From: Camelus dromedarius
Lineage: Eukaryota
Length of the DNA: 64,000 nt
Direction: 5' to 3'
Assembly (NCBI RefSeq): GCF_036321535.1
Contig: NC_087446.1
Coordinates: forward strand, 57,908,001-57,972,000
Shown: positions 5,936 through 53,600 of the stretch, one piece after another
Layout: every line of letters starts with the position of its first letter
Numbering within the stretch: position 1 is the stretch's first letter
Notes under the pieces: model-generated
Told to the model about the DNA's origin: nothing
The model's input: only the letters and a program-made list of their open reading frames with translations
Databases searched by the model: none
Program-made: the position numbers and the translations under genes

Positions 5936-6004
5936 TCATTAGCACCTTCTGAACTTGGGTCCACAGGGCACCTTTAGCTTCTTTAGGAAATTGATCCCCA
6001 TGTG
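5936..6004 (+). promoter_or_regulatory. Candidate OR promoter module (homeodomain site + O/E-like site) for the 7960 gene
   Basis: TCATTA 5936-5941, 18 nt, TCCACAGGGC 5960-5969, then AAATTGATCCCC. About 2.0 kb upstream of the ATG. Confidence 0.6.
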
Positions 6005-6584
6005 CCTGCTCTAAATAAGGAGCAGATAAAGTCTGGGTCACTCTTGCTAACACGGAATCTGCAAAGTCCATATCTTAGCTTCTAAGGACAGCAACATAAT
6101 TTACCATAAATCAGAAAACTTAGGAGATTTTCAGCTGATAAGTTGTCTTTTTTAATTCTATCACAGTTATTTTTTTAATTGGGGGGGGGGGGTTGTTTTT
6201 TTGCTGCTCCTAAATTGAACTGTATCTCTCAAGAACTGAGGTATCATTCTAGTTTGAATTATTTGGACTAATAGAAAAACAACTCACTTATTTAGTTAAG
6301 ACTTATAAAGTTGGGTACTTCCATGAGAGAGCATGGCAGGATAGGATCTGACAGTATAAAAATATGCTAATTTTTTACCATTTGTAGACTCATGTGTGAA
6401 TCTCGTCTTTGAGTCATCTTTTCAAATCAACAAAGTAAACAGACCACTGCAAATTGTGAAGAGTATGAGCACCTTATGTTTCCAGTTCCCAGAATCAGCA
6501 ATATTATCATTTTGTGGACATAGACCATGAAATTATACTACTGTGAAGTTCTGGAAGAAAACACAAAGCTACTATTAAAAATCA

Positions 6585-6593
6585 CAGGTGAGT
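6585..6593 (+). other. 5' splice donor of a candidate non-coding exon of the 7960 OR
   Basis: Perfect CAG|GTGAGT with GT at 6588, between the promoter module and the acceptor. Confidence 0.45.
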
Positions 6594-7926
6594 ACATCAG
6601 GGAAGTGAGATCCAGATCTGAGAAAACCAGTTCAAGGTTCAACCTCACCTGGTCCCTCCGTACTCACTTATGGCTGTCATGGGAAAATTATCACTGATGT
6701 CTGAAAGTATATGATTTTTCTAACTAACTATGCATGTGGATTAGATTATCCCTTAAAATGTCCTTTGCCACAGGAATCTTCAAAATCCGATAGGGCTGAA
6801 GATGGCAAATCAAAGTTTCCTTCCTTGTGCACCATTAATTTATCTACAAAGGACAACTATAATAACAATATTAGTGCCAACTTCCTGCTCTCTGTGTTCT
6901 AAGAGCAGTGGACACACATGTCTGAGATTATAACCAACTTCTACTCCCAAATACTATTCAGGCATCTTCAAAACTTTCAGCAAAATCCATTCTGAGAGAT
7001 GTGTCCTGTGGCTGCCACAGTCTCTCTCTGCCTGGAAGTGTGCCAAATCAGTGCCCAGAAGACTCCAAATACGGCAGCAAAGCATAAAGTTTAATGCTTA
7101 TCAATATGATTTAGTGATGACCGAGACCTGGACAGAGGAAAAGACTGACAGGATAAAACGACAGAGTCATGAAACAATGGTCTCAGAATCTTAAAGGCCA
7201 GATAGACATTCACCTCAAAAAATTCAAAGAGGTAGCAAAAAGTCAGTGTTGGATCTGGGACCTGCAGCATCTCCTGCACTGGGAGAATTTCCACAGGTTA
7301 CTTACAGAGGGAACCAGGAACCAGCATGTGAAGGAGATGAGGGTCAGTGACAGACACATGATGAGGTATCAGGTAGTACGTGAAGGGGAACACAGAAAGA
7401 AAAGAGGAACAAGGAGAAACATTTATACAAGAACATAGAAGTGAGAGAGGTAAGTCAGCTACAATGATTTAAGTGTAGGAAATTTATGAACATTTCATAG
7501 GAAAGGACAGGTCCAGACAGAGTCATTCTTGTGTGACATATCTTTACTAAGAACCTAGGAATAGGAGAAATGACAAGAACTTCATGAATAGAATCAGTAT
7601 TTTACATTTTGGTGCTTTTATCCCACTGTATGACTCTTCTATGCACATCCTTTGTGTGTGTGTTTTAGATATGTTTTATTCTTTGTGTTTAAATCAATTT
7701 GTACTAATGTTTTAATGTGAAAATATTAACCCTGCCAAAAAAAAAGCTTTATGAGTCAAGCCACTTGCACAGGAGACTTGCGGCTTCCCTTTAGCCAAGC
7801 CCAGTCCAATGGGATGCCAGTTCGGGTCAATTTGAATGAAGAGTTGATAACATGACCTGCTTGTGTTGGTTGCCATTAACTTCATTTTTCCTACCCTAAG
7901 AAACTTCAGTTTTCATCACTGATCCT

Positions 7927-7941
7927 GCCTTTTTTCCTTAG
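7927..7941 (+). other. 3' splice acceptor
   Basis: GCCTTTTTTCCTTAG ending at 7941; homologous to the acceptor at 15726. Confidence 0.7.
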
Positions 7942-7959
7942 ATCTACTGAGGGCCAACA

Positions 7960-8889
7960 ATGAAAAACCAAACCACATTTACTGAGTTTATCTTGCAGGG
8001 CTTCACAAATCAACCAGAACTCCAGGTGGTGATATTCATCTTTCTGTTCCTCGCCTACATGCTGAGTGTCCTGGGAAATCTGACTATCATCATACTCAGC
8101 CTGGTAGACCCCCACCTCAAGACGCCCATGTATTTCTTCCTCCGCAATTTCTCCTTCTTAGAAGTTTCCTTCACGTCCATTTTTATTCCCAGATTTCTAA
8201 CCAGCTTGACAACGGGAAATAAAGTCATCAGCTTTGCTGGCTGCTTGATTCAATATTTTTTTGCTATACTTTTCGGGGCCACAGAGTTTTACCTCCTGGC
8301 TGCCATGTCCTATGACCGCTATGTGGCCATCTGCAAGCCCCTGCAATACCTGACCATCATGAGCAGCCGAGTCTGCGTCCAGCTCGTGTTCTGCTCCTGG
8401 CTGGGGGGGGCCCTGGCTATCCTGCCGCCAATCATGTTGATGAGCCAGGTGGACTTCTGTGCCTCCAATGTTCTGAATCAATATTACTGTGACTATAGAC
8501 CCCTCCTAGAGGTTGCCTGCTCAGACACAAGCCTTTTAGAATTAATAGTCATCTTTTTAGCCATCTTGACTCTGGTGGTTACTCTGATGCTGGTGACACT
8601 TTCTTATACATATATTATCAGGACTATTCTGAGGATCCCTTCTGGCCAGCAAAGGAGAAAGGCATTTGCCACTTGTTCCTCCCACATGATTGTCATCTCC
8701 CTCTCTTATGGCAGCTGCATCTTTTTATACATTAATCCATCACCAAAAAAACGAGGAAACTTCGACAAGGAAATTTCTCTGCTCATGACTTCAGTTAGCC
8801 CCTTGTTGAATCCCTTTATTTATACCCTAAGGAATCAGCAGGTGAAGCAAGCTTTTAAGAGCACAGTGAAAAAAATTGTGAAGTTTTAA
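7960..8889 (+). CDS. Olfactory receptor, OR6C4-like paralogue, intact, 309 aa
   Basis: Full OR motif set. Paralogue of 15745-16674 with homologous flanks; several atypical residues. Confidence 0.93.
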
Positions 8890-8929
8890 TCATCAGAATT
8901 TATTATTTTAATCAATAAAATCAAACTAA

Positions 8930-9330
8930 CAAATATTTGAGTTACTACATAAGTATTAAGTGTCTACTATGTTTCAAGTGATAATCCTGGACATTGAGAA
9001 TAGAAATACAAGAAATACGGTTCCCAGTTTCTAAGAACCTCCAGTCTAGTATCACAGAGTGATATAAAAACAAATAAATTATAATCAAACTTATTAAGTT
9101 ACTACAAAGGGATAAATGAGATGCCGTAAAAAAGACTTGAGACAAATTACTTCACTCTTGATTTCATGGCATTTCACTTTTGAGGTGAAATTTGAAAGGC
9201 AAAAGGAGTTTATAATGGGAACAGTAGGAGGATGTTAATTTAGAGTGGATGGTGGAAGCCCAAGAATGAAGATATTTATTGCACATTTAGGAGACAGCTA
9301 GGCATTACTGAGCCAAGAGAAAGCAAAAGA
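8930..9330 (-). mobile_element. L2 fragment
   Basis: Reverse-complement L2 3' end (aaatatttgag..aagtgtctactatg); homologous to 16720-17150. Confidence 0.55.
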
Positions 9331-11329: not shown

Positions 11330-12211
11330 TCTCAGATAAAGATTATTTTAGATGCTACAAATACAGTAAGCATTATTGTCCGGATAAATGCTTTAAGAGG
11401 AAGTGAGTGGTACCCAACAACAATTGATCCAGTTAACCCAGGATATAGCATCAATGGGGAGAGGTGGTAACGGGAAATTCTGGAAATCTTTAATAATGGT
11501 TCCCATAAACTCATGAAAATTGGATTGTGGCCAACAAGTGAATGCCTGGTCCCCTCAAAGTAAGCAGACTCCTACAGTGTACACATAAAAACTGTACATA
11601 TAAAGCCTAGAATGTTCTATTGATTGCTACAAGGGTCCTCCAGTCATTTTGACCCACAGAACATATTCATTTTATGTGACTGAATAATTTTTATAGGAAA
11701 AGCCTGAAAGATGGAAATGAAAACAAACAGACTAGTGTTCATATGGTTAGTCCCATATCTGCATCTTCTTCATTGGTTAATCCTGTGTTTTGAATTTGTT
11801 GGGTTAAGCATTTTCATTTTAATAATGAGGCCCCTGTGGCCATGCCAAGTTTGTGTGGTGCTGCCTCCAGGACCCAAGGCTTAATGGGCAACTGGGTGCA
11901 GAATCACAGGCTCAGGACTTGTGAAAGCATTTATTCCAAGATGGGCCCACCATACAGCCAACATTGCCATCTTAATGATATGTAGGAGGGTGCAGCCAAG
12001 GAAGACAGTTTTTTGCACTAGAAGCCCTTGAACAATCCACAGCCACCACGGCTGATCCAGGGACTTCAGAAAGAATGAGAAAAGGCTATTGAAGCCTCGA
12101 CAGTGAAGGAGTCTCTGTGGGGGAGGAAGGAGGACACTAATAGAAGTGCCTGTTTTGTTGCAATTTAGAGCCCTCTGTTGTTGGGTGGCCCATTCAAAGT
12201 AAGCAAATTTA
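11330..12211 (-). mobile_element. Class III (ERVL-related) ERV pol fragment, connection/RNase H part
   Basis: Minus-strand translation AYFEWATQQQRAL ... MLAVWWAHLGINAFTSPEPVILHP resembles ERVL AASFEW..Q.KAL and LLACYWAL..E.LT. The lower boundary is approximate. Confidence 0.7.
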
Positions 12212-12960
12212 GGTGCAGCCATTCTGCAAAACAGTATGGAGTTTCCTCAAAAAATTAAAAATAGAAGTATCATGTGACCCAGCAATTACTCCTCTAGGTA
12301 TTTAATCTGAAGAAAATGAGAACACTAACTCGAAAAGACATCTGCGNNNNNNNNNNNNNNNNNNNNNNNNNNNNNNNNNNNNNNNNNNNNNNNNNNNNNN
12401 NNNNNNNNNNNNNNNNNNNNNNNNNNNNNNNNNNNNNNNNNNNNNNNNNNNNNNNNNNNNNNNNNNNNNNNNNNNNNNNNNNNNNNNNNNNNNNNNNNNN
12501 NNNNNNNNNNNNNNNNNNNNNNNNNNNNNNNNNNNNNNNNNNNNNNNNNNNNNNNNNNNNNNNNNNNNNNNNNNNNNNNNNNNNNNNNNNNNNNNNNNNT
12601 ACAGAGAACACACTAGTGTTTGCCAAAGGTGGGGGGGGGGGGAGGTGGGAGACATGAGTGAAGAGAGTCAAAATGTACAAAATTCCAGTTATAAAATAAG
12701 TCCTGGGGATGTAATGTACAGCATGGTGACTATAGGTAATAGTACTGTCCTGCGTATTTGAAAGTTGCTAAAAGAGTGGATCTTACCACAAAAGAAAAAA
12801 ATTTTAATGATGTATGGTGACAGATGTTAACTAGACTTACTGAGGTGATCATTTTGTAATATATATAAATATCAAGTTATTATGTTGTATTAATGTAATA
12901 TTGTAGTCAACTATACTTCCATAAAAAAATAAATAAATAATAAATAAATAAATGGAAAAA
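12212..12960 (+). mobile_element. L1 3' region inserted into the ERVL pol, contains an N gap and an (AAAT)n tail
   Basis: gtgcagccattctgcaaaacagtatggag ... gtcaactatacttccataaaaaaataaataaat. Confidence 0.85.
12347..12599. other. Assembly gap (N)
   Basis: N run inside L1. Confidence 1.
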
Positions 12961-12974
12961 GGAAAAACAAAACA

Positions 12975-13684: not shown

Positions 13685-13825
13685 GGTTCTCACTCCACTG
13701 TTCCCAACATCACAAACCTCACGGCTGGGACAGATTCTCTCATGGAGCCCTTCATGGTCTCTCAGGAACTTCTCTCCTCAGCCATATGTTGACAACTTGT
13801 TCTCAAAGTTGTCAACAACTGAGGT

Positions 13826-13894
13826 TTATTTGCACCTTTTGAACTTGGGTCCATAGGGCATCTTTAGCTTCTTTAGGAAATTGATCCCCCTGTG
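13826..13894 (+). promoter_or_regulatory. Candidate promoter module for OR6C4
   Basis: TTATTT (degenerate HD) 13826-13831, 18 nt, TCCATAGGGC 13850-13859, then AAATTGATCCCC. About 1.9 kb upstream of the ATG. Confidence 0.55.
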
Positions 13895-15712
13895 CCTGCT
13901 CTAAAAAGAGCAAATAAAACCTGTAGCATCACTCTGGCTACAGTAGGAACTGCAAAGAAGCCCATATCCTGCCTTCAAAGGGCTCTGCGATAATGTCTCT
14001 TAGAACAGAATTATTAAGGAATTTTGGTCTATTAAAGACCTTTCTTTGAATCCTATCATTGCCAGGGAAGGGGGCTTATTTGCTTATTTATTTGTTTTTT
14101 TTTAATACATATGCAGGGGTCTGTTTCTCAGGAACTATGGTTTGATTCCAGTTTGGAGTCACAAAACGGAAGGTAATTCACTTCCTTCCTAGTTAAGTCC
14201 CACAACCTTGGGTCCTCCCATTAAGAGAAGAACAGAATGTGGATGGAGGCCAATAGAAAACATGCTAAATTCTATACCACTCGGAGACTCATGTGGCACA
14301 TCTCATCTTCGACACACCTCTTAGGAACAACAAGGTAAACAACCCACTGCAGTCATTCAGACTGTTGAGGCTGTGAGCACGGTAGATTCTTAAAGTCAGT
14401 GATGTTACTATTCTATATACGTGGATCGTGAAATCCATCAACTGTGAAAATCTGGATGAAAATGCAGAACTTGCCAAAGATGACATGTTAGTACAGACAA
14501 GGAAGGCATGGCTGTAGGGGATAGCAGTCAATGTTTAATATCAACTAGTGCCTCCAAAAGCTGTATGGAATAATGGGGAGACTGACAAGAATGACTGTGA
14601 GGATATGATTTTCTTTATCAATATGCATGTGAGTTTGAGGGGCTTTTTATTGTCTTTGTTTCTTAATCAGAAAAGTCTAAAGATGCACATAGGATCCCAC
14701 CACCAGAGTTTCCTCCCTTAGGGATTACCAATGTGTCTACAAAGGACTCTTATTGTCAGAAACATTAATTTCCCTCTTCCTGGTTTCTGTATGCCAAGAA
14801 AATTTGAGGCATGATAAATGATCACCCGTAGTTTGCCACTGAGGGACTCTTTGAGACTTTAAGCAAAATCTACTCTGAGACGCCGTCTATAGATCTCTTG
14901 AGATCTCTATTCTCAGAGATATATCCCAAGTCAGTGTGTAGGAGACTTTGAAAATGGCAGAGAAACATATGTAAGTCCTAACTGATATGATTTACTAATG
15001 CCTGAGACTTGTCCGTGTAGTCACAAAGCTCCCAAAATAAAATGAGAGTATTGAACCAAAGATCATAAAGTCCTAAAGCCCTATTACAAATTCATCCTAC
15101 AAAAGAAGTAGGGGTGTAGGAAAAATCAATTATGCATCAAGATCTTCAGCATTACCTTCTTGGGGAAATTACTATTGGCTGCTGAAATAAGTGAGTCAGA
15201 GATTTCTACAGTAACAGAGATGAGGCTCCATGGCAGACGTCCACAGAAGCCTCAGATAGTGCAGGGGGAGGGGAAAGTGCAGAGAAGGGGGGAGCACAGT
15301 GAGGGGAGAGGGAAGCACAGAAAACAGAATCAGACAGAGATGTTTCTATCAAGTGCCCAGGAATATGAGAGATTCACAGTCAGAGAAAAGTGACTTACAT
15401 GTGAAGATTTCATAAACATTTAAGGAAGTAAAGATAAGATGGGTTCAAAAATTTCTTCTTCTGAAAAAAATTGAGTAATTATTCTGTAGTAAATTCTGTT
15501 AAGTGTCCAGGAATGGATCAGCTTGGAGAGTTACAAAGACTTAAGGAATAAGGTCACTTACATGGGAGGTGTGGGGCTTCATGGAGCCAAGTTCGGTCCA
15601 ATGGGACAGTGGTTTGGGCCAAATGGACGGAGAGTTATATTTGACCTAATTCTTTGATTACAATCAGCTTTATTTCTCCAATCCCGAGAAACTTTAGTTT
15701 TCACCATGCTCA

Positions 15713-15744: not shown

Positions 15745-16674
15745 ATGAAAAACCGAACCACATTTACTGAGTTTATTCTGTTGGGCCTCACAAATCAACC
15801 AGAACTCCAGGTGGTGATTTTCATCTTTCTGTTCCTCACCTACATGCTGAGTGTCCTGGGAAATCTGACTATCATCATACTCACTCTGGTGGACCCCCAC
15901 CTCCAGACCCCCATGTATTTCTTCCTCCGGAATTTCTCCTTCTTAGAAATTTCCTTCACGTCCATTTTTATTCCCAGATTCCTAACTAGCTTGACAACGG
16001 GAAATAAAGTCATCAGCTTTGCTGGCTGCTTGATTCAATATTTTTTTGCTATATTTCTTGGGGCCACAGAGTTTTACCTCCTGGCTGCCATGTCCTATGA
16101 CCGCTATGTGGCCATCTGCAAGCCCCTGCACTACACGACCATCATGAGCAGCCGAGTCTGCATCCAGCTCGTGTTCTGCTCCTGGCTGGGGGGGTTCCTA
16201 GCTATCTTACCCCCAGTCATCTTGATGAGCCAGGTGGACTTCTGTGCTTCCAATGTTCTGAATCACTACTACTGTGACTATGGGCCCCTCCTGGAGCTTG
16301 CCTGCTCAGACACAAGCCTCTTAGAACTGATGGTCATCTTCTTGGCGGTTGTGACTCTGGTGGTTACTCTGGTGCTGGTGACACTTTCTTATACATATAT
16401 TATCAGGACCATTCTGAGGATCCCTTCTACCCAGCAAAGGACGAAGGCTTTTTCCACATGTTCTTCCCACATGATTGTCATCTCCCTCTCTTACGGCAGC
16501 TGCATGTTTATGTACATTAATCCTTCTGCAAAAGAAGAAGGTGTTTTCAACAAAGGAATAGCTGTGCTCATTACTTCAATTACTCCCTTGTTAAACCCTT
16601 TCATTTACACTCTAAGAAATCAGCAAGTGAAGCAAGCATTCAAGGACAACATCAAAAAGATCATGAAGTTTTAA
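15745..16674 (+). CDS. OR6C4: Olfactory receptor OR6C4 orthologue, intact, 309 aa
   Basis: Closely matches human OR6C4 as recalled ([52 protein letters not shown]), same length, expected position before OR2AP1. Confidence 0.88.
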
Positions 16675-24168: not shown

Positions 24169-25107
24169 TTAATATTTCTTTGAAAGAAATGCAAGTCTTT
24201 TCAAGATGTCATGGAAAGATTGCTTTACTTGTTTATTTCTCAGGGTATAAATGAAGGGGTTCAACAAAGGAGCAACAGATGTCGTGAGCAGGGAAATTCC
24301 CTTATTAAGGGCCACTTCATCCTTAGCTGAAGGTTTGATATACATAAAAATGCAGCTGCCATAGGTCATGGAAACCACAATCATGTGGGAAGAACACGTG
24401 GAAAAAGCTTTTTTCCTTTGCTGAGCAGAGGGTAATCTTAGGACCATCCTGATGATGTGTATGTAGGGTAGAATTACACATACAAGGGTCATTATGAAGG
24501 TCAACACAGCACAGAGTATAACCAGCTGCTCTATGAACCATGTATCTGAACATGAATTCTTCAGTATTGGAGAAGCATCACAGAAAAAATGGTCAATAAC
24601 AGAGTCACAGAATTCCAGGTGGAGACTCAGGCCAAGGGGCGGGAGAATAATCAATAAGCCAGATACGCAACAACAGACGATGAGATTCCTGCGGACTCTG
24701 CTGTTCATGATGGTCACGTGGTGCAGGGGTTTGCAGATGGCCACGTAGCGGTCATAGGACATCACAACCAAGAGGAAAAATTCTGTAGCTCCAAAGAGGA
24801 CAATAAAAAATATTTGGCTGAAGCAGGCATTGATGGTGATGGTTTTGTTCCCACTTGATATGATGTAGAGGTACGTGGGGACACAGGCAATTGTAAATGA
24901 GATTTCTAAGAAAGAAAAATTTTGAAGGGAAAAATACATAGCTGTTTTTAAATGAGAATCTACCAAGATGAGGGAAATTATGGTCAGGTTCCCAATTACA
25001 CTTAACATATATGTGATCAACAGAAAGCTAAAGGCCAAAATCTCTAGTTGTGGGTCATTCGTCAAACCCAGGGTGATGAACGTTGTTACAGCCGAACGGT
25101 TTCTCAT
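24169..25107 (-). CDS. Olfactory receptor, OR6C2-like, open frame but eroded motifs, 312 aa
   Basis: ATG at 25107 (track start 25110 is GTG). Has [31 protein letters not shown]. The only minus-strand OR in the window. Confidence 0.9.
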   Translation of the reverse strand: MRNRSAVTTFITLGLTNDPQLEILAFSFLLITYMLSVIGNLTIISLILVDSHLKTAMYFSLQNFSFLEISFTIACVPTYLYIISSGNKTITINACFSQIFFIVLFGATEFFLLVVMSYDRYVAICKPLHHVTIMNSRVRRNLIVCCCVSGLLIILPPLGLSLHLEFCDSVIDHFFCDASPILKNSCSDTWFIEQLVILCAVLTFIMTLVCVILPYIHIIRMVLRLPSAQQRKKAFSTCSSHMIVVSMTYGSCIFMYIKPSAKDEVALNKGISLLTTSVAPLLNPFIYTLRNKQVKQSFHDILKRLAFLSKKY

Positions 25108-25919
25108 CACTGACTTCGTACTATGGCCACTGGTTCAAGACTGCTTCACATAAAAGGCACAGAAATTAGATCTGAAGAGCAATGTCAAAACGTGACAGAG
25201 GCAGACCGCATCTATAATGCCCAGCAAACCCAGTCACATGCATGGCCTTCTGGAACTTAACAGTCCGATTTTAGTGAGATGATTCCCTCAAATCCACTGA
25301 AATGTGCCACAGGGAGGTGAAGCTTTGGGGAAATTTCTTTTGAAAATTACTGCTACTAAAATTGTTTTAAATATTCTAGGATCTCCCAATTCACAGCACT
25401 ATTTCCAATTCTCTTTTTTTTAAGTCCATACTTCGGTTGAGACATCTCCTATTGGATCAGAAGTTGGCCACTTTTTAGCTATACTTTGACGGGTCATTGA
25501 GTCTATTTATTCCAAAGCATTTGTACTCAAAAGCTAAATCCTAAAATTCGTTTGCTTTAAGTTGTGGTGCCTGATAAAATGCAAATATATGGAAGATAGC
25601 ATTATGCCCTAGGTGCAGAATCTCTCCAGATCTTTCCTCCAGTGAACGAAGCATTATTTAAAGGTCAAGTTAGATTTCTCCCAGAAAATAGTCATTCAAT
25701 GGCCCCTTTCTCCGGACTTTTTCTAAGTTCCTCTTATTTCCTTTTTTTCTATCTCTGTTCTCCGCAGAGAACTTTATTAATGCATGACTATTTTAATACA
25801 ATTTGAAGAAAACATGGGTAAAAATGGATAAATAGCTGAAGGATATCAAGATATACTTTGCTTTCCCTCCTTCATGACAGCAGAAGTGTGATACGTGTTT
25901 CACAGGGGCTAAATCTATG

Positions 25920-30472: not shown

Positions 30473-30622
30473 NNNNNNNNNNNNNNNNNNNNNNNNNNNN
30501 NNNNNNNNNNNNNNNNNNNNNNNNNNNNNNNNNNNNNNNNNNNNNNNNNNNNNNNNNNNNNNNNNNNNNNNNNNNNNNNNNNNNNNNNNNNNNNNNNNNN
30601 NNNNNNNNNNNNNNNNNNNNNN
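30473..30622. other. Assembly gap (N)
   Basis: N run between L1 fragments. Confidence 1.
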
Positions 30623-34200: not shown

Positions 34201-35514
34201 TTCTTTTAATTTAAGGACTAAGATTTAAAATTGTATTAAATTTTTTAAACTTTTTAGAAAAAAGAAGTGCAGCCATAAAAAAAAGTGTAGCCTTTCCAAA
34301 TAATTCATTATCAAATAATTTCCTCCATGAATCACTTCCTAAGCAGATTTCCACCTCTTGCTCTCCTTGTTTTATTTCATGTTGATCTTTGTTCCCAAAT
34401 TCCAAGCCTGCCCAATTTGCAGCCTAGACTGGCTCATCAATGACCTGCCACTCAACTTACTTCCTCTCCCTCCCCTTTCTAAAGAAGAGATTCACTCTAA
34501 CCCAAATAGAGCATTCGCAATCTGTCAGACTCAAGCAGTTTCCACTGGTAACTTTGGCTTTCTTGTCTGTAAACACAATTGAAAGAAACAACTGAACTAT
34601 TGCCAAATACAGTTGTATAGTAATTCCCTCATTGGAGAAAAGAAAGTGGGAAACGTCTGTGAGGCACGTACTGTGTAGTTGGTACTTAGCAATTATAAGC
34701 CTATTTGAAGGGCATCATGGTCTCTATTTTACAGAAGAGGAAAGTGAGAACCAGAGAGATGGAGCTTCTTGTGTCACTCAAGGTGGAGGTGATTATTGTG
34801 TTAAATTTGGTGAGACCACGTTCGTTCTCTGGGCCCCACCACTGCTATGAGAATTATATGCAACCATGTATAAGGAAGCCATTTATAAGATATTCGTACG
34901 GTGGATACTTTGTTCCTAACTCTGGCATTTTGCTCACTAGCATTGGTTCTTCTGATGCTTGAATTCTGTTGATAAACAGGTGATGAATCTGATAAATTAA
35001 CTGCTATGAAGATGTCTTTGGGTAGCAAAGGGTTAGCCCTCCCAGGTAATATATACATATCTTAAGTTCTTCACTACCTTAAACTGGAAATTTGCAAGTG
35101 TTTTCTCAGAAGAGACTCACAAGTCAAATGGGATCCCACCCCTATCTCAAACTGAGCAATCCCCTTTTATACATTCTATATTTCATTTATGCACACACTT
35201 CGAAAAATGAAAATCACTGCTTACTGTCTTCAGCCAGTAGTCTATAAATGGGCTAATTACAACCAGGCTAACAATGTTTATCAAATGGGACTCTTCAGGA
35301 CATTTGTGACCTGCAAACGGTTCCACCTAAGCTGTTGTTCTACAGCCAAGTCCAGCCCTGCCCACCCACGGGGAAAGGCAAATGTCAAGACTCCACAATC
35401 TTCCCTGCTCTGCAGCTACTGCCCACCCAACCTCACCTCCAAGCTAGTCTCTCTGGATCTCATCACTTAGCCATGTATTTAAAATTTGTTCCCAGAGTTG
35501 TTGACAAAGGACAT

Positions 35515-35584
35515 TCATTAGCCTGTTCCAAACAAGAATCCCCAGGGCAACTTGTGCTTCCTCACTCAATTGATTCCCCCAGTG
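35515..35584 (+). promoter_or_regulatory. Candidate promoter module for OR2AP1
   Basis: TCATTA 35515-35520, 18 nt, TCCCCAGGGC 35539-35548 (9/10 to TCCCNNGGGA), then CAATTGATTCCCC. About 2.0 kb upstream of the ATG. Confidence 0.65.
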
Positions 35585-37562
35585 CAATCTCTCAATAGAG
35601 CAAATATAACCTTCGTCACTCTGGGTAAAGTACAGCTGAGATGGGAGGGGGAGTTCATATTCTGCCTTCTGAGGTCATTAACATCATTTTTCCTAGAACA
35701 GAAAAATCCAGGGCAACTCTGCTCCTCAAAGTCCTTCTTTTAACCTTTATACTGGCTCCACTTTTAAAAGACAGGCTATCCAAAAACTCTGATGCAGTCC
35801 CAGTCTTAATGAGTGGAAAAACAGAAATGGGCAAATCCCCACTAAACTGGTAAGGAAGTGGTCTTAAAAGACTATTTCTTACCAAGAGAAGCCCTGGAAG
35901 TTTTTGTAACTTCTATGAAATGCTGGATAGGACTTGGTGGCAGATAACATTGAAAATGCAATACATTTTATTTTATCTTATAATAATATAGTCTTATAAT
36001 TTTATATACCTCTAAGAATATTTAGGACTAAAATCTCACTATAGCCATTCGGATAGTCAAGTGAGAAGGTATATTCCCTCTTTACAGCTTCATTGATTTT
36101 ACCTCTCTGTGGCCGTGAAGCCTGAAACCAATGCAGATGTGAATATTCAACCTTTCCCTGAAGATTTCAGGTTGGTAACCAGGAGGGCAAGGGCATCCAG
36201 AGCACTGTGTAACTTCTCCCAGTCCCTGATTCCAACTGTGGACTGCATCCCACTAGTGGCTTATGGAATCAATTTAATGGGTTGCAATCAGCATTTGAAA
36301 AAAAATTTTTAGTAAAATAAAATTTAAAATACTATGTCGTACCACATGCAGTAATAAGGAATGTTCTGTAAAACCTTTATTTAAGTTAGACATATACAAG
36401 TTTTGCCAGAAAATGATACAAAATGCAGAATGCATTATGGTCAAAATGCTTGAAAGCAGCTGCCCTATAAATGTTTGTAAAAAACAATACATATAGAAAA
36501 TCTTGAATAAGCCAGCAAGGATGCTCTCATATAATGTGATTCTTAAACAACATGAACTCACAAATCAGTAGAGACTTGAAATGTTCTTGAAGTGCTTAAA
36601 CGTGAAGACTCCTTAGAAAACCCTGGATCATAGTTTTTATATACTTTTCCTGTAAAATTTCTATACCCATATACCCAAAATGTTTTACACATGATTTAGT
36701 GGGTTCATAGATATGGTAAATCCAATCTAGAATTAACAGATCCCTAGTTTAGAACTCCTGCTTGAAATATTCTGAAGCTCCTAAAATTTCCTTGAAATGT
36801 AATAGCATCTGCCTGTCCTTAAAGGAAAGCAAAGTTCTAGATCTAAAGATTCTGAATGCATTTGTGTAAATGGAGATTTTTATTCTAATCTAATATTTGC
36901 TGAACTGTAGACAGGTATATGGAATGGTTCAAAGGACAGAAGACTTTTCATTCTAATACACAATCTTTGAATTCTAACAGACAGAGAAAGAGGGTCTGTT
37001 GAAGAAGAAGTGAGGAGCTGGTACTCTTGGCATCGAGGGAATTGAGGGAGTTCAACAGGAAGGAAAATGAGAGGCTGATATGACTGTATGAAAAATAAAA
37101 ACAAAAATGGCAGAGAAGCGTAAGAAAACAAGCTCATCTAAGAAGAGTTAGGCAGGCAAAGGAAGCAGGGCAGTAAGTGGAACCAATGAGAAGTAAGGAA
37201 AGTGAATACAGGGGAAAGAAAATTAGTAATTTCTGGAAGGAGACAGCTGTTGCAGGCATTCCTTTATTAACTCTTTTCAAAAACTATTTAAACATCATCT
37301 ACGAAGCGATTATTTCATATTGGCACTGGGGAGAGTACATTTGGAGAAATCATAATAAGAACTTTCTATATAGGGCAAACAGGACTGGCAAGAACCCAAC
37401 ACCATTCAAATGGGCTGCTGGGCTGGGTCATGTCATCAGAGGAAAAGTTCATGGTCCCTCTCCTTTTGTTCTCTTCAGATTTCATGTCCCTTTCAGAATA
37501 CCTCTTCCTTTCTCACCTTTTATTATTACCATTTTACCTTGAGACTCAAAATTGTTTAAGCA

Positions 37563-38492
37563 ATGCAAAATAAAACCACATTGACTGAGTTCATCCTGCT
37601 GGGTCTAACAGATGTCCCTGAACTCCAGATGGTGGTTTTCACCTTTCTGTTCCTTGCCTATTTGCTCAGCATGATGGGAAATCTGACGATCCTCATCCTC
37701 ACCTTGCTGGACTCCCACCTTCAGACCCCCATGTATTTCTTTCTCCAGAACTTCTCCTTCTTAGAAATTTCCTTCACAAACATCTTCATTCCTAGGGTCC
37801 TGATCAGCATCACAACAGGAAACAAGAGCATCAGCTTTGCTGGCTGTTTCACTCAGTATTTCTTTGCCATATTCCTTGGGTCAACAGAGTTTTACCTTCT
37901 GGCCGCCATGTCCTATGACCGCTATGTGGCCGTCTGCAAGCCCCTGCACTACACGACCACCATGAGCAGCAGAGCCTGCACCCAGCTGGTTCTCTGCTCC
38001 TGGCTGGCTGGGTTAATGGTTATTATACCACCAATCACTCTGATGAGTCAGCAGGACTTCTGTGCCTCCAACAGGCTGAATCACTATTTCTGTGACTATG
38101 AGCCCCTTCGGGAACTCTCCTGTTCAGACACAAGCCTCATAGAGAAGGTTGTCTTCCTTGTGGCCTCAGTGACCCTGGTGGTCACTCTGGTGCTAGTGAT
38201 TCTCTCCTACACGTTCATCATCAGGACTGTTCTGAAGCTCCCCTCTGGCCAGCAAAGGACAAAGGCCTTTTCCACTTGTTCTTCCCACCTGATTGTCGTC
38301 TCTCTCTCTTATGGAAGCTGCTTCTTCATTTACATTAAGCCCACAGCAAAAGAAGCGGATTCATTCAACAAGGGAGCCGCTCTACTCATTACTTCAGCTG
38401 CACCTTTGTTGAACCCCTTCATTTACACCCTAAGGAACCAACAGGTAAAACAAGCCTTCAAGGATACAGTCAAGAAGCTTATGAAACTTTAA
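37563..38492 (+). CDS. OR2AP1: Olfactory receptor OR2AP1 orthologue (OR6C-related), intact, 309 aa
   Basis: Diagnostic segments match recalled human OR2AP1: [21 protein letters not shown] and [43 protein letters not shown]. Lies downstream of OR6C4. Confidence 0.88.
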
Positions 38493-43950: not shown

Positions 43951-44426
43951 ACATCCACCACGCACATCTATCAGAAATTTGGTAGACTTTTCCTTTTCAG
44001 GGCACAGAAGACTAAAGTGAAGGGAAAGGGTCTAATGGGGAAAACGCTAAACCCTCTACATGGCTCGTGTTACCTGACCAATGTAAGAGTACCACGGCAA
44101 CAGAAGGCAAATGGCCTCCTACACCTTGTTCTTTAGGAGGCATATGGTGCTAGGAACATTAAATAATTAAGGTATGTCGTCCAGCATTATGCACAATGTA
44201 ATGAAGGTGTGTTGTGTAGCGTTATGCGTAGCACATGGTAAATGGCTCAAAAAATATACTGTTGTTCTAGTTCCCACGATTATTTTTCATCGTTGTCATT
44301 ACTCCAGCTTCCACGAGGCTTTTGAACTATACTGATGCTCTCCTGCTAACTTCCTCAGCGTCTCTTTGGACTTCTTCCCCAATCCCTTATTAAAAGTTCA
44401 ATTCCAGAGTTCTCAGCAAATAGGGC

Positions 44427-44460
44427 TCATTAGCATGCTCTGAATGGGGGTCTCCTGGGA
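44427..44460 (+). promoter_or_regulatory. Candidate promoter module for the 48203 gene
   Basis: TCATTA 44427-44432, 18 nt, TCTCCTGGGA 44451-44460. Upstream CCAGAGTT...CAAA is homologous to the other copies. Confidence 0.62.
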
Positions 44461-45059
44461 TCTTTTCTCTCCTTCCTCATCTGATTATGCTGAGGTCTCC
44501 CCCGAATAGAATATTTAAAATATGCTTCCATCTGGTGTAAAATCAGAAGCAGCACATATCCAGGCTCAGATGAGTCAGAACGGAGGAAACTAGACTTTGA
44601 AGGGAGGGTGGTTTCTATTATCACTACCATAAACACATTTAACTTAAATAAATCACACCTCAAAGGATTACCTGCTGGCTGGGGGGCATTTTACATTTTA
44701 TGTGGAGATAAGAAGTGGCAAATGACAGCTAAGCTGATATACAGCAGGAGGAGTAGGAGTTTTTCTACCAAATTTTCATAAGTTTGTGAACTTTTGTGAT
44801 GAATTAGGTCAGTAAGTAGCGGTGGGAAGGCAGACAAGTTCAGTTTTATGCTACCTTTCCTCCACATCTGACTTCTAAACTGTGATTCATTCCATAGAGG
44901 TGCACGGGTAAAACCCTACAGAACTTTCCCTGAAAGTCAAGTGTAAGTATATTCTCAGCTTCTAGTTAAATCAGTGTTACCTGTTTGTGATTATAGAGCA
45001 TGAAATTATATTACTGTGATTTTTCTTAATTAAAAAGTAACTCACGCTTGTTTTACAGT

Positions 45060-45530: not shown

Positions 45531-46879
45531 GTTCACCAAAGACCAACAATTAATGACCAGGAAGTGCAAGAGCCTGGACATTCAGGTACTGGATGGCATT
45601 ACCAGGTTCCACACATCCTGTGATTGGGACGTTCCTAGGGACAATGGCAAAGATGGCTCTCTGGTGTTCCAGATAGGCACACGGGCCAGGGATGTACGGA
45701 GGGAGCGGGGCTAAGGATTTCTTTATTTCAGGAAACTTAAAAGATCAGAACAATATGAAAATGCCTAATTGATTCTAAAATTCAAAGCTTCTTTCTTGGA
45801 ATAAATGCCAACATTTCTGAAAAAGAATATTATGACCACATAATCTGGTAGCCCACTTCCTGGTTCTGTGTTCGGGCTGTACCTGTATCTTATGCAAAGT
45901 GCCTCAGCCCATCCAGGGAGCTTAGAGAGCACAGATGGAGGAGTCCAGGTACAAATGAACACCTCTCTCTAAGTGTCAGGGGTAAGAATTTAAAGTAGTT
46001 CCTGAAAGCCCCTCCTGAAATCATGTGCTTTCTGAGGTTTCTCTTTCCATCAGTGACAGGTCAGTATTACGAAAACAAAGCATGAAGGAACTCTGTGCCC
46101 AAACAAACTTTACATGCATTAAGTCATTTTAAAATTATTGTATCCCCCTCACCCTCAGTAACACATAACAGAAATACAGATTTTTATTGTTTGGGGATAG
46201 AGGAGCACCAACTATGAACAAGGAAAATCTCAAAATACAACCTTGCTAACAGAGGCCTGGCTCTCAGCTCCTAAAATCTCACCAGAGACTACATGACTCA
46301 TTGATCATTCATCAGTGGAAGAGAGAAGGGAAGTGATAACATCAATTTATAGATTGAAGAGACTTTACCCTAGACTAACTCTTGAAAGTTCCTATTCACT
46401 GTTAGACAAAAAAAAGCTAGGAAAATGCACAGTTTATATGGTTGATTTTCAAGGACAAAGGGTAAACAGAGAATAAAATGGTGGGGAGGGGGTAAAAGAA
46501 AGAGAAGGGCACTACCTTTTTTCATTTATTTAATAACCATGTATTTTGATTATACTGTGTGTTTTTGCCAATGTTACTGAGGAGTAAAAGAACACCAAAA
46601 GAGGAAGAATGTATTTATGAAGAGCCTGGCATAAAACCAGCACTACAATCATTCAGCAGGTGTTGGTTCTCTTGCCCTTCCTCTGCATTTAAGGAACTTA
46701 CAGTCTGTTTTGGGGAAAGGTGACATATACACAGAAAACAGAAAATGGTCAATGCCTGAAAAGAATGCATCCTATGTGTTAATTCTTATCTTAGAATCAG
46801 ACATCTCTCTGAATTTATTCTGTGTCACAGATTTTCAGATACTCATTTTGATGTAAAAAATCCACATAGAATGCAGCCA

Positions 46880-47230
46880 GTCTGGAAGGCAGTATGGTGG
46901 TATCCAGCAAAACTGAAAATAGAATTATCATAGGATCCAGCAAGATATGCTGCTGGGTGTACACCCGGAAGAAATGAAAGTAGAATTTTGAAGATATATT
47001 TGCACACCCATGTTTACAGCAGCATTTTCACAATAATCAAGAGATAGAAGCAACCCAAACATCCATTACAGATGAATAGGTAGACAAAATGTAATATATA
47101 TGTACAATGGAATATTATTTAACCTCAAAAGGGGGGAAGTCCTATCACATGGTACAATATAGATTAACCTTGAGAACATTATGCTAAACGAAATAAGCCA
47201 GTCACAAAAAGACAAATATTGTACATAAGT
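46880..47230 (+). mobile_element. L1MA/MB fragment
   Basis: atcataggatccagcaag..ctgggtgtacacc..cacacccatgtttacagcagcattttcacaata. Confidence 0.8.
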
Positions 47231-48167: not shown

Positions 48168-48186
48168 TTCCTTTGTACCTTCATAG
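48168..48186 (+). other. 3' splice acceptor
   Basis: Pyrimidine tract then CATAG ending at 48186. Confidence 0.65.
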
Positions 48187-48202
48187 GCAGCAAAGGGCAG
48201 CA

Positions 48203-49132
48203 ATGAGAAACCACACCTATATGACAGAATTCATTCTGCTGGGACTGACAGACATCCCAGAGATTCAATTTGTAATCTTTATACTTCTCTTCCTCACCTA
48301 TGTATTCAGCATCTTAGGTAACCTGACAATCATCACCCTCACGCTACTGGACTCCCATCTCCAGACTCCCATGTATTTCTTCCTCCGGAACTTCTCCTTC
48401 CTAGAAATTTTCTTTACAACCACTTTTACTCCTAGGCTACTGTTCAGCATCTCAACCGGGAACAAGAGCATCAGCTTTGCTGGCTGCTTCACTCAGTATT
48501 TCTTTGCCATATTCCTTGGGGCCACAGAGTTTTACCTTCTGGCTGCCATGTCCTATGACCGCTATGTGGCCATCTGCAAACCCCTGCATTACACGACCAT
48601 CATGAGCAACAGAGTCTGCATCCAACTGGTTCTTTGCTCCTGGCTGGGGGGATTCCTCATCATTGTATCCCCAATCATCCTAACCAGTCAACTGGATTTC
48701 TGTGCCTCCAATGTCTTGAATCATTATTATTGTGACTATGGACCCCTCATAGAAATATCCTGCTCAGACACACGACTCCTGGAGCTGGCTGACTTTATCT
48801 TAGCAGTTGTGACCTTGGTGGTCACCCTGGTGATGGTGATTCTCTCCTACGCAAACATCATCCGGACCGTTCTGAAGATCCCCTCTGCTCAGCAAAGGAA
48901 GAAGGCCTTTTCCACGTGTTCCTCCCACATGATTGTCATCTCCCTCTCTTACGGCAGCTGCATCTTCATGTACGTAAAACCCTCAGCAAAAGAAGGAGTT
49001 GCCTTCAATAAGGGAGTAGCTGTGCTCAATACATTAATTGCCCCTTTACTCAACCCTTTCATTTACACCCTAAGGAATAAGCAAGTAAAACAAGCCTTCA
49101 AAGATGTGTCCAGAAAGATTGTGAGTCTTTAA
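48203..49132 (+). CDS. Olfactory receptor, OR6C4/OR2AP1 clade, intact, 309 aa
   Basis: Typical start MRNHTY at 48203, just after a polypyrimidine-AG acceptor ending at 48186. All OR motifs present. Confidence 0.93.
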
Positions 49133-50349
49133 TGAATGTAAAGACCTCAAACTCAAAAGAAAATCTGAAGAGTAGTAATATTCTTGAATTCCTCCCCATG
49201 AAAACAAAGGCAGAACTCCTTTAACCCTCTCCTTAGTAAAATAGCATCTCAGATGAATTTATCATAAAGAAGTGTCGAAGTTATGTTCCAGACTTGCCAA
49301 GGAGGGGGGGGGGAATCTTCCAAAACCAGTTCAAATATTTCTTCCCAGTAAATAGATTTTTGAGCCAGACATTTTAAAATTTTACAAGAAACCTAAAACA
49401 ATACCACTCTTCTCATGACTTTTTTGCAGATTATAGTTATTTTAAATAAAAATATATTATTTGTAAAAAAAAATTGTGCTAAAAAGAAATGTTTGTTATA
49501 CAATTATTCTAAAACAAATGAATATATAGATTTTTTAAGTTCTCAGTTTAATTTCTAATAAGATTAAAAATGGATATAGATATAACCACTTGATAAATTT
49601 TTATACAAAAAAGATGTAGCAGGTAACACTGTCAGTCTGAGTACAAAAATGGAATAACTGGATAAAATTACTAGGACTGTCACAAGACTGATGGTCCTGG
49701 GCTTATTGGAAAAGTTTAACTTTACAAATGAGGCTCTTAATTTCATGAAAGTCTTTAAGAAAGTTGTGCAAACATATTTTCAGAAATACTAGACATTTTC
49801 CAGAAGAGGCTAGTAATTACATTTTGCAGTAAGGCTTTATTTCACTCTTGGAAAAAAAACACCATCTTCTCTTAAGGTTGAGACAATTTTCTTCCTCATT
49901 ATTCTTGCTTTGAGAATTCTAAAACTGTCTCCTTTTAGACGTTTAATACAAAAAGGATTTTCAGTTGTAGGGTTGATACTTATGACTCTACCTCTCCTTC
50001 CAGTCATGAAATTAGAATGAAAACTATCACCAGGGGCATCTCCAACAGAGTGAATATCCAACTTCCTCTTAAGGGAAGATTCAGAAGAGTAAGACTCTTC
50101 AGCCATGTTGCAATGGACAAAACCTACAGCACTCTGAGTGACCCTGAGCTGTAGAGGACATATTTTGGAGATGAACTTGAGGAGGCTGAGTGAAAGAACT
50201 GCCTAAGGATGCCTTAGGGAAAAACATCCACATTTTGTAAGGATTTGTTTTTTAAAGTGTAGTTAAAGTGGGGAGGGCAAAAAAGCCTATATGGTGTAAG
50301 GTGTCTGCATCCTTTGAGGTAAAATCTTGATTCTAAGTGGACTGGGGAA

Positions 50350-51325
50350 AGTTAAGCATGCATATTGTAACTCCTACAGAAATGACTTCAAAAATTAAAC
50401 ACAGAGACACAGTCAAAAATCACAAGAAATAAGTGAATTTAAAGGGAATCATAAAAAAAACTTCAAATAACTGAAAAGTAGGCATGAAAAGGGAAACAGA
50501 GGAAATAAACAGATAATAATAAAATGATGGACATGACTCCAAACAGATCAATAATTACATTAAATATAAATGGTCCAAAAATGCCATTTAAAATAGAGAT
50601 TATCAGAATGGATTTTTTCTAAATGACATAACTATATGCTGTCTAGGTGAAATTCTCTTTGAATATAATGATTTATGCAGGTTAAAAGTAAATAATCTAG
50701 AAATATATACCATGAAGACACTAATTACGAAAAGAGTCGATTCACCAAGAAGACATCCAAAATGCATACGTACTTAAAAACACAATTGCAAATTATGTAA
50801 GTTAAAACATATAATTCAAACAAGAAATAGAAAATCCACAGTTGTAACTGATGACTTCCACACCCCTCCCTCAGTAATACATATAATTAGTGGACAGAAA
50901 ATAAGCAAGGATATAGAAGAACTGAACAACACTATCAAATCAATTAGATATAACTGACATTTATAGACGATTCCACCTAAAACAGGAGAACACAGAGCCT
51001 TTTCACATGTACATGGACTATTTACCAAAACCCTGGGTCACAGAACAAACCTTAGCAGATTTTAAAAAACTGGAATAATATAAAGTATGTTCTCAATTCA
51101 TAATGGAACTAAACTTGAAATTAGTAATAGAAACATAACAGAAAATTCTCCAAGCACTTGGAAATTAAACAGCCACTTCTCAATAATTCATAGGTCAAAG
51201 AGGAAGTCTCAAAAGAAATTAGAAAATATATTGAATTGAATTAAAATGAGAACCCAATATACCACAAATTGTAATGCAAGCGATAACAGTATGTAAAGGG
51301 AAATTTATAACATTAAATGCTTGCA
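50350..51325 (+). mobile_element. L1MC-like ORF2 start region
   Basis: ataattacattaaatataaatgg ... gaagaactgaacaacactatcaaatcaattaga. Confidence 0.75.
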
Positions 51326-51339
51326 TTGGAAAAGATGAG

Positions 51340-52730
51340 GTAGGATTTTTTTCTGCTTAGCTAAGATATAGCAGGCATATAATATTATGTAAATTCAAGC
51401 TATTCAGTGTGATGATTTGATATACATATATATACTGAAATAAGGTTAACCACAATAGGGTTAGTTAACACATTCAACACCCCATATAGTTAGTTTTTTT
51501 GTTGTGTGTAGTGAGAATAGAACTATTCTTTTAGGAACTTCCAAGTATACATTATTTTTTTACTTTTTGGAAATTTGAACAATAAGTTTTTTCAGAGATA
51601 CCTTCATTTTTATTTTTTTCAGCCTCACTGAGATATAACTGACATACAACCTTCTTGAAGTTTAAGGTGTAAAACATGATGATTTGATACAGGCATATAC
51701 TGGGAAATGATTACCACAATAAGGTTAGTTAGCATCTCCATTGCCTCAGTAACCACCTTTGTGTGTGTGTTACAGAAGATGAGTGAATTCTGGGCATCGA
51801 ATGTGAAATACTGTTAGCTATAGTCACATGGAGTACATTAGATCCCCAGAACTTAATCATCTTATAACTGGAAGTTTGTACCCGTTGACCAACATGTCCC
51901 TATTTTCCCACTCCTCAGTCCCTGGTAACTATCAATCTATTCTTAGTTTCTGAGTGCAGATTTTTCAGATTCCATATAAAAGTGAGATAGCACAATACTT
52001 GTCTTTTTCTGTCTGATTTATTTCACCTAGCATAATACTCCCAAGGAACATTCATGTTATTGTAAGTAGGAGAATTTCTTTCCTTTATGGCTAAATAATA
52101 CTCCATTGTGTGCATATCCATCATTCTCTGACAGATGCTTAGGTTATTTCCATACCTTGGCTATTGTGAAGGATGCTCCAGTGAACATCAAAATGCAGAT
52201 ATCTCTTTGACATACTGATTACATTCCTTCAGATATGTGTATATATATCCTAGAAGTGCAATTGCTGCATTGTGTGATAGTTCAATTTTTAATTTTTTAA
52301 AGNNNNNNNNNNNNNNNNNNNNNNNNNNNNNNNNNNNNNNNNNNNNNNNNNNNNNNNNNNNNNNNNNNNNNNNNNNNNNNNNNNNNNNNNNNNNNNNNNN
52401 NNNNNNNNNNNNNNNNNNNNNNNNNNNNNNNNNNNNNNNNNNNNNNNNNNNNNNNNNNNNNNNNNNNNNNNNNNNNNNNNNNNNNNNNNNNNCTGGTTTT
52501 TTAAGTGAAAAAAAAAAGTGAATGATGGGCCACAAATGGCAAAGTATCTTTCTTTCTCATGCATGAGTTGTATTCCATTACATATACGTATGCTGCATCT
52601 TCATCATCTATTCAACTATTGACGTGCACTTAGGATGCTTCCACATCTTGGCAATTATAAATAATGTTGCTGTTAATAGCAAGGTGTATGTATCCTTTTG
52701 AATTAATTTTTATTTTGTTGTTGGCTTTAT
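51340..52730 (-). mobile_element. Two tandem L1MA9-like 3' regions (about 51340-51545 and 51610-52730), one N gap inside
   Basis: tgatgatttgatat..gattaccacaataaggttagtt..cataccttggctattgtgaa. Confidence 0.8.
52303..52492. other. Assembly gap (N)
   Basis: N run inside L1. Confidence 1.
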
Positions 52731-52789
52731 TTCTTTGATAACTATGTAAGTTTAAAAAGCTAAAGCTCTACATGTTCTTAGAAACAATG

Positions 52790-53320
52790 AACAGTACATA
52801 TATGTAAACTAAAAAATACATGTGCAGTGAAAAAAATGAGCTATCAAGCCATGAAACACATGGAAGAAACTTNNNNNNNNNNNNNNNNNNNNNNNNNNNN
52901 NNNNNNNNNNNNNNNNNNNNNNNNNNNNNNNNNNNNNNNNNNNNNNNNNNNNNNNNNNNNNNNNNNNNNNNNNNNNNNNNNNNNNNNNNNNNNNNNNNNN
53001 NNNNNNNNNNNNGGAGGGAGGAATGAACAGATGGAGCACAAGGGATTTTTAGGTATGATACTATAGTGGTGGCTACATGACATTACGCATTTGTCAAAGC
53101 CCATAGAATGTACAACATCAAGAGTGAACCCTAATGTAAACTATGGACTTTGGTTGATAATAATGTGCCCATGCTGGTTCATCAATTGTACCAAATATGA
53201 CTCACTGATGAGGGATGTGGAGGGTAGGGGAGTATAAATGTGTAGGTGGGGACAGCTATGTGGGAATTCTGTATTTTTTTGCTCCGTCTGCTGTAAACCT
53301 GAAACCAATCTAAACAAATA
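52790..53320 (+). mobile_element. L1MA/MB 3' end with an N gap
   Basis: gagctatcaagccatgaaacacatggaagaaactt ... gtgaaccctaatgtaaactatggactttgg. Confidence 0.8.
52873..53012. other. Assembly gap (N)
   Basis: N run inside L1. Confidence 1.
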
Positions 53321-53550
53321 GCCTATTTTTTTAAAAAGTAATCTCATTAAATGTCATGGCTTTAAATAGTGAAAAAAAAAGAAACTGATGTTGCAGTTTT
53401 TACTATTATTATCATCATTATTGCATCACTTCCCACAGGGCTTTTCTCCTGTAACTGATCCCCTTGTGACAGCTTCCTCACGGGTCTCTTTGGAGCACCT
53501 TCCCTAATTACCTGATAAAAGTTAATTCCCAACATTATTTTTTTAAAAAC

Positions 53551-53600
53551 TAATTAAAATTTTCTGGACCTGGATCCCAGGACAATATTTTATCCCCCAA
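53551..53600 (+). promoter_or_regulatory. Candidate promoter module for the 55612 gene
   Basis: TAATTA 53551-53556, 18 nt, TCCCAGGA 53575-53582, then TTTATCCCCC. About 2.05 kb upstream of the ATG; flanks homologous to 44.3-44.6 kb. Confidence 0.5.

Follow-up and report, generated by a model that had tools for sequence, protein, structure and literature searches.

A deeply conserved block upstream of the OR6C4/OR2AP1 clade of olfactory receptor genes in the dromedary is probably their shared proximal promoter

Do the closely related olfactory receptor (OR) genes that lie side by side in one stretch of the dromedary genome share an inherited promoter and, if they do, is the distance between its factor-binding sites itself under selection? 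The stretch analysed here (the window) comprises 64,000 nt of Camelus dromedarius contig NC_087446.1 (assembly GCF_036321535.1, positions 57,908,001 to 57,972,000 of the forward strand), and coordinates refer to it unless another locus is named. The window contains seven intact OR reading frames. Five of them, all on the + strand and called g1 to g5 here, form one clade with mutual amino acid identity of 69–88%, while the other two (2182-3153 on the + strand and 24169-25110 on the - strand) are more distant, with 56–69% identity. A first-pass annotation had placed the five genes in an OR6C4/OR2AP1 clade, which is correct: in a protein search g3 is 99% identical to OR2AP1 of Camelus ferus, and the next relatives carry the name OR6C4. 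Upstream of each gene it had described a homeodomain (HD)-type hexamer followed, after exactly 18 nt, by an Olf-1/EBF (O/E)-like site, and it had read this module as the ancestral promoter of the clade with a selected spacing. As described below, the module belongs to a larger conserved block, which is probably the proximal promoter shared by this clade of class II OR genes, with the module as its core, as judged from its sequence, its position and its history.

All five modules are on the + strand. The letters and coordinates given for them in the annotation are exact at all five sites (ten motif positions), and the spacer measures 18 nt in every camel copy. TCATTA at 5936-5941 is paired with TCCACAGGGC at 5960-5969 in g1, TCATTA at 35515-35520 with TCCCCAGGGC at 35539-35548 in g3, TCATTA at 44427-44432 with TCTCCTGGGA at 44451-44460 in g4, and TAATTA at 53551-53556 with TCCCAGGA at 53575 in g5. 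In g2, the hexamer at 13826 reads TTATTT and is followed by TCCATAGGGC at 13850-13859. The claim of an HD-type hexamer in each copy holds for g1, g3, g4 and g5 and does not hold for g2, in which the TAAT core is lost. The O/E-like sites are also unequal. Scored against the specified positions of TCCCNNGGGA, those of g3 and g4 match at 7 of 8 positions and those of g1, g2 and g5 at 6 of 8, and the g5 site, which as a 10-mer (53575-53584) reads TCCCAGGACA, is a weak call. A degenerate pattern that covers all five modules has five matches in the 64 kb, exactly these and on the + strand only, where 1.9 are expected by chance (five were reached in 3 of 100 shuffles); a stricter pattern has three matches against 0.06 expected. 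The ATG follows the HD hexamer at a distance of 2024, 1919, 2048, 3776 and 2061 nt in g1 to g5, in agreement with the ~1.9–2.05 kb first reported for four genes and the greater distance reported for g4.

The module is embedded in a block of ~240 nt that aligns in all five camel copies. When each copy was searched with nhmmer using a profile built from the other four, every one was recovered, with E-values from 4e-18 (g5) to 5e-40 (g1). In blastn comparisons between the five upstream regions, the block is the best, and often the sole, non-coding match. On these sequence comparisons the five copies are truly homologous. Read 5' to 3', the first consensus element is GTCTCTCTGG(A), the 10-mer with the highest conservation in the five camel copies; ~60 nt then lead to TCATTA (TAATGA in the minus strand), 18 nt further comes the O/E-like 10-mer, and AATTG follows after 19 nt. 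The 3' half consists of ~20 nt, CTCTCA, 15 nt, a TATA-like ATA[AT]AA, 12 nt, TCACTCT, a variable stretch and CATAT. The TATA-like box (ATAAAA, ATATAA or ATAAAG) has a near-fixed place ~55 nt 3' of the O/E site.

All blocks are on the + strand. The g1 block spans 5839-6098 (nhmmer E 3e-63) and carries GTCTCCCTGG at 5867, ATAAAG at 6026, TCACTCT at 6038 and CATATC at 6069. The block of g2, a gene of the OR6C4 type, spans 13725-13991 with ATAAAA at 13914. In the OR2AP1 gene g3 the block occupies 35418-35685, with GTCTCTCTGG at 35447, ATATAA at 35604, TCACTCT at 35616 and CATATT at 35656. The g4 block (44330-44571) shows TTAAAA at 44515. The g5 block (53455-53693) is the most decayed camel copy; it has a deletion of ~17 nt 3' of the O/E-like site and ATAAAA at 53622. 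Conservation is uneven along the block: the HD hexamer is the second most conserved of 222 six-column windows and the whole module from HD to O/E ranks second of 193 windows of equal length, the O/E site alone is 38th of 217, and the spacer is average.

In respect to its surroundings, the block is clearly delimited. When g1 and g2 are aligned globally, identity reaches 86% in the core (5913-6032) and ~55–65% in the intron that extends to the ATG, and it is at random level 5' of 5850, so the block sits at the 5' edge of detectable homology. Upstream of the two distant ORs of the window, as well as of neighbouring ORs in the orthologous loci that were fetched, only chance-level matches were obtained (E 0.1–4); within the window, the block is therefore specific to the five-gene clade.

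The orthologue set was reached from proteins found with g3 and comprises ten loci from nine other placental species, namely OR2AP1 of bear, zebra, elephant, hamster, tamandua and mole, and OR6C4 or OR6C4-like genes of hippo, Przewalski horse, elephant and guinea pig. The block is present 1.6–2.9 kb upstream of all ten orthologues and also accompanies three neighbouring clade members in the same loci (nhmmer E 1e-21 to 1e-73), which together with the five camel copies gives 18 copies. No further copy was found away from clade genes in the ~270 kb searched. Conservation of the block exceeds that of the neighbouring DNA: among six OR2AP1 orthologues the pairwise identity is 0.72–0.78 over the block, against a baseline of ~0.5–0.55. 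In a maximum-likelihood tree, the 18 copies group by orthology and not by species (support of 100/99 for OR2AP1, 99/98 for OR6C4 with g1, 97/94 for camel g1 with the upstream mole copy, and 100/98 for camel g4 with the second hamster copy). This grouping indicates that the duplications are older than the placental radiation and that each copy was kept independently, and such independent upkeep in each gene lineage points to purifying selection rather than to concerted evolution or leftover similarity.

The hexamer is TCATTA or TAATTA in 12 of the 18 copies and TTATTA in one elephant copy. The O/E-like site matches at 7 of 8 positions in seven copies (camel g3 and g4 among them), at 6 of 8 in ten, and at 2 of 8 in a decayed copy of the mole; TCCCCAGGG is identical in OR2AP1 of camel, bear, elephant and hamster. 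The mean GC content of the 18 copies is 0.44–0.50 from -200 to +150 around the HD site, compared with ~0.36 in the flanks. The decayed mole copy (L009 2863-3071) lies upstream of an OR at 4887-5816 of that locus; its HD site was lost through a 1-nt deletion, and ~23 nt are deleted further 5'. The 309-aa frame of the gene behind it is intact, and the copy may represent a natural variant of promoter decay.

The homology, position, deep conservation and motif content of the block are direct observations, and they can be compared with what is known of OR promoters. Among those of the mouse, 78% contain a conserved O/E site no further than 200 bp from the transcription start site (TSS), 39% show a TATA-type match between -60 and -10, and the mean GC content is 36%, with a local rise and no CpG islands (PMC3247239). 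The AT-rich sequence of OR promoters shows a rise in GC near the TSS and contains HD and O/E motifs, both of which are required in M71, and ~300 bp of promoter is enough to drive OR-like expression (PMC12547500). An enrichment of a TCTGGR core is reported within 300 bp of OR start sites (PMC3247230), and GTCTCTCTGGA contains this core. The block agrees with this picture in the features that could be compared: it shares with the mouse class II OR promoters an AT-rich composition with a local GC rise, the lack of a CpG island, and conservation across mammals, and its TATA-like box may correspond to the TATA element that some of them have. It also resembles the M71/Olfr151 and MOR23 promoters, in which HD (TAATGA-type) and O/E-like sites lie close together upstream of a non-coding first exon, here a putative one. 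In contrast to these promoters, the O/E sites of the block match mostly at 6–7 of 8 positions, and the HD core is lost in OR6C4 of camel, hippo and horse. The promoters of the mOR262 and OR37 genes (Hoppe et al. 2003, 2006, as cited in PMC3247239 and PMC12547500) are alike in a further way: as far as the two citing papers describe them, they too consist of one block of ~200 nt per gene that was duplicated along with that gene, contains HD and O/E-type motifs and is maintained between species, but they belong to a different OR clade and their block sequence is unrelated. Literature searches found no published promoter description for the OR6C4/OR2AP1 clade.

The position of the TSS, the arrangement of exons and the binding factors are inferred. 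In the proposed order from 5' to 3', the GTCTCTCTGG(A) element would come first and a homeodomain site ~60 nt later; this site reads TAATGA on the minus strand, a type recognised by Lhx2 or Emx2. Next, after 18 nt, would be an O/E (Ebf)-like site, with the TATA-like box ~55 nt further, and transcription would start in the TCACTCT/CATAT region, ~100–140 nt 3' of the HD site. The transcript would open with a non-coding exon a few hundred nt long, to be joined by splicing to an acceptor 15–25 nt before the ATG of the single coding exon. Each of the five genes has a pyrimidine tract and an AG at 15–25 nt before its ATG, and the candidate acceptor AG ends at 7941 (g1), 15726 (g2), 37543 (g3), 48186 (g4) and 55588 (g5). 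The first-pass claim of an ancestral clade promoter agrees with the shared block (the one non-coding island of strong conservation common to all five paralogues), its position in the orthologues, the grouping by orthology and the published signature of OR promoters, the promoter function itself being inferred.

Several observations weigh against this assignment. The loss of the HD core extends from the three OR6C4 genes to one mole copy (hippo OR6C4 has TTATTT as in camel g2, and the horse OR6C4-like gene has TCATTT). In 11 of the 18 copies the O/E site matches at no more than 6 of 8 positions, and a 6-of-8 match is calculated to occur by chance about once per 240 nt, and the TATA-like box is degenerate. 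In the OR2AP1 orthologues, conservation at the level of the block runs on for ~650 nt further 3', which means that the block is not the sole constrained element. A donor position common to all paralogues was not found, and the TSS may be situated further upstream than the block. The sequencing runs in which the locus is represented, some unlabelled and others labelled as RNA of a "reproductive system metagenome" (X1-X9 and X25), include its non-coding flanks, and the shares of the region covered are alike for 5800-8900, which is mostly non-coding and upstream of coding sequence, and for the putative g3 exon. These shares increase with the size of the run (0.32 for 514 million letters and 0.47 for 939 million), as random genomic coverage would, and so carry no information on expression. 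The RNA-labelled metagenome runs behave like low-pass host genomic DNA.

With the proximal promoter as the preferred reading of the block, the second part of the question concerns its spacing. The start-to-start distance of HD and O/E sites is 24 nt (a spacer of 18 nt) in 17 of the 18 copies, in lineages that split before the placental radiation. In the single exception, the upstream copy of the mole, 1 nt is deleted within the hexamer and neither motif survives. Of the 41 distinct gap intervals that the alignment has over its 209 consensus columns, none falls in the spacer, where 3.9 would be expected (Poisson P ~0.02); the rate was taken from the rest of the block, and the test is post hoc and concerns one interval of nine. 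In a pairwise comparison with camel, bear OR2AP1 (L001 7103-7136) does show a 1-nt deletion and a 1-nt insertion inside the spacer, which cancel out. All of this would fit a promoter grammar in which the factors at the HD and O/E sites are held at a fixed distance, and in which the 18 nt are selected as such.

We nevertheless give this explanation a minor chance, as the constancy is not peculiar to the spacer. The 15-nt interval from CTCTCA to the TATA-like box and the 12-nt interval from there to TCACTCT vary in just 3 and 2 copies, respectively. The O/E site itself varies in length in 6 copies of the alignment, and in zebra (L002 7379-7413) a substitution and a 1-nt insertion shift the best O/E match to 19 nt. 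The sites are 26 nt apart from centre to centre, which corresponds to ~2.5 helical turns and places them on opposite faces of the helix. The spacer sequence is also conserved within lineages, as GCCT.TTCCAAACAAGGA in OR2AP1 and GCACCTTTTGAACTTGGG in OR6C4, so that its resistance to indels may stem from further sites and not from a measured distance. In OR6C4, GCACCTTTTGAACTTGGG (window positions 13832-13849 and the orthologues) is near-invariant from camel to guinea pig, and its minus strand includes AGTTCA, which we take to resemble a nuclear-receptor half-site. The first-pass claim that the spacing is selected is thus weakly supported: the distance is constant and the bear indels compensate each other, but the P value (~0.02–0.05) is post hoc, the neighbouring intervals are nearly as constant and the spacer sequence is itself conserved. 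The constant spacer most likely reflects dense constraint over the whole core, and a distance requirement between the two factors is possible.

Published work also places stereotyped spacing elsewhere. In the composite element of the Greek Islands, the sites for Lhx2 and Ebf stand juxtaposed, and recognition suffers when 2 bp are inserted (PMC5608512). The composite motif is enriched in enhancers and not in promoters (PMC5608512; PMC12547500), and a stereotyped Lhx2–Ebf spacing is reported for Greek Islands and not for OR promoters (PMC5608512). The block is like the Greek Islands (Monahan et al. 2017) in combining the same two motif types at a stereotyped distance. It differs from them in that its sites are 18 nt apart edge to edge (in the 17 of 18 copies), and in that it occurs once per gene, 1.6–3.8 kb 5' of the ATG and duplicated with the gene, while Greek Islands are intergenic and few per cluster. 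Identity with a Greek Island or Lhx2–Ebf composite was rejected for lack of juxtaposition and of an intergenic placement serving many genes. A selected HD-to-O/E grammar distinct from the juxtaposed composite, which at least four gene lineages would have preserved for ~100 million years, with a compensating indel restoring it in bear and a joint loss of the distance and both motifs in mole, seems unlikely to us.

A further explanation leaves the constraint in place and changes the role of the block, which would be a gene-proximal regulatory element or an internal 5' non-coding exon, with the true promoter and TSS upstream or at strongly conserved elements ~0.5–0.65 kb downstream. Multiple 5' exons and alternative starts are common among OR genes, and in g1 to g3 a pyrimidine tract and an AG, as in an acceptor, stand just 5' of the core; in g4 and g5, however, the AG reads AA. 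The ~520 nt 3' of the OR2AP1 block (35690-36215, + strand) are conserved as strongly as the block itself in OR2AP1 orthologues from seven orders, with matching regions at L001 7280-7797, L002 7556-8073, L003 7711-8232, L005 7338-7846, L007 7991-8501 and L009 8576-9072. At 36122-36181 the pairwise identity (0.76–0.82, with the peak of 0.82 at 36152-36181) equals or exceeds that of the block, and CAG/GTTGGT (slash at the splice point), which lies beside it at 36171, can be read as a donor or as an acceptor. This region is probably the first non-coding exon or exons, or further regulatory DNA. On the side of the block as proximal promoter are the homology of g1 and g2, which stops just 5' of it, the failure to find a further paralogue-wide conserved element upstream, and a layout of HD, O/E and TATA-like sites with a GC rise that fits published proximal promoters. 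We consider a non-promoter role of the block improbable on balance, and keep to the proximal promoter.

As candidate donors of the putative first exon, both CAG/GTTGGT and AA/GTGAG at 36061 occur in all six aligned OR2AP1 sequences. Candidate donors are found 455–650 nt 3' of the HD site and are conserved within lineages. Weak collinear paralogous matches to the region are present at 14180-14369 (g2) and 53843-54038 (g5) and also in the elephant and horse copies, and several of these have GTAA[AG] ~45 nt upstream of the site that corresponds to the OR2AP1 donor in the alignment. A shared splice donor at GGGTAAAG of the block was rejected, being absent in the OR6C4 lineage and in hamster and too near the TATA-like box. 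The N-terminal extension of protein P0029 looks like a translation of the genomic DNA that precedes the ATG, so that it marks no upstream exon and was discarded as a spliced transcript; the extension of P0044, whose source is a 7.7-kb contig, was discarded likewise and is probably genomic too. The RefSeq "isoform" proteins P0043 and P0024 differ at the C-terminus and not at the N-terminus.

Gene conversion does occur in the cluster. The coding exons of g4 (48203-49132) and g5 (55612-56544) are 95% identical, with a divergence at 4-fold sites of 0.06, and the corresponding value for g1 and g2 is 0.19; both are far below the divergence of the surrounding non-coding DNA. The coding sequence is for this reason no neutral clock, and conversion would be confined to the coding exon. 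In g4 and g5 it appears limited to that exon, the blocks (44330-44571 and 53455-53693) being deeply diverged. That the similarity of the blocks has no function, and is merely residual from duplication, gene conversion, a transposable-element fragment or a structured RNA, is very improbable, since, despite the clear homogenisation of the g4 and g5 coding sequences, conversion does not reach their blocks (g4 groups with a hamster copy), the orthologous conservation spans four placental superorders, and no copy is found apart from clade genes in the ~270 kb searched. Three specific candidates were rejected as well: a structured non-coding RNA, as Rfam gave no match in 35300-36300 at E up to 1 and RNAalifold predicted 0 pairs over 17 copies; a coding sequence, as the block carries 1–2-nt indels; and a dispersed repeat, as no copy lies away from clade genes in those ~270 kb.

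The remaining features of the window concern gene structure and distances. The g1, g2 and g3 coding exons lie at 7960-8889, 15745-16674 and 37563-38492 (+ strand, 309 aa each), and those of g4 and g5, given above, are also on the + strand and were counted from the conserved Met. The extra length between block and ATG in g4 lies between ~45.5 and 48.1 kb. The first-pass annotation had ascribed it in part to an L1 insertion, which was not confirmed: Pfam found no L1 protein remnants in ten open reading frames from 45.1–47.8 kb. An old interspersed repeat of ~350 nt (46871-47223), which recurs with 65–70% identity at non-homologous places in the loci of elephant, tamandua, hippo, horse and bear, explains part of the longer distance. 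The assembly gaps (N runs at 4386-4539, 12347-12599, 30473-30622, 52303-52492 and 52873-53012) are all outside every interval from block to coding sequence, the nearest (52873-53012) ending 442 nt 5' of the g5 block. They affect only the certainty of gene-to-gene distances, and no claim made here needs continuity across a gap.

In general, the sequence comparisons present the block as a real, deeply conserved cis-regulatory element, most likely a proximal promoter, and as a new example of a well-known kind of promoter. The current picture is unchanged by it, as promoters with HD and O/E sites and the conservation of promoters across an OR subfamily are already established. If the HD-to-O/E distance were indeed fixed by selection, it would provide a testable case for OR promoters, which have so far been described without stereotyped Lhx2–Ebf spacing. 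For the OR2AP1/OR6C4 clade, the block offers a precisely bounded, deeply conserved candidate promoter with a set of natural variants, in which the HD core is lost (OR6C4), the O/E site has decayed (g5 and one mole copy), indels compensate each other (bear) or the best O/E match is shifted by +1 (zebra), and these variants could be used to ask how the HD site, the O/E site and their spacing set the probability with which an OR gene is chosen.

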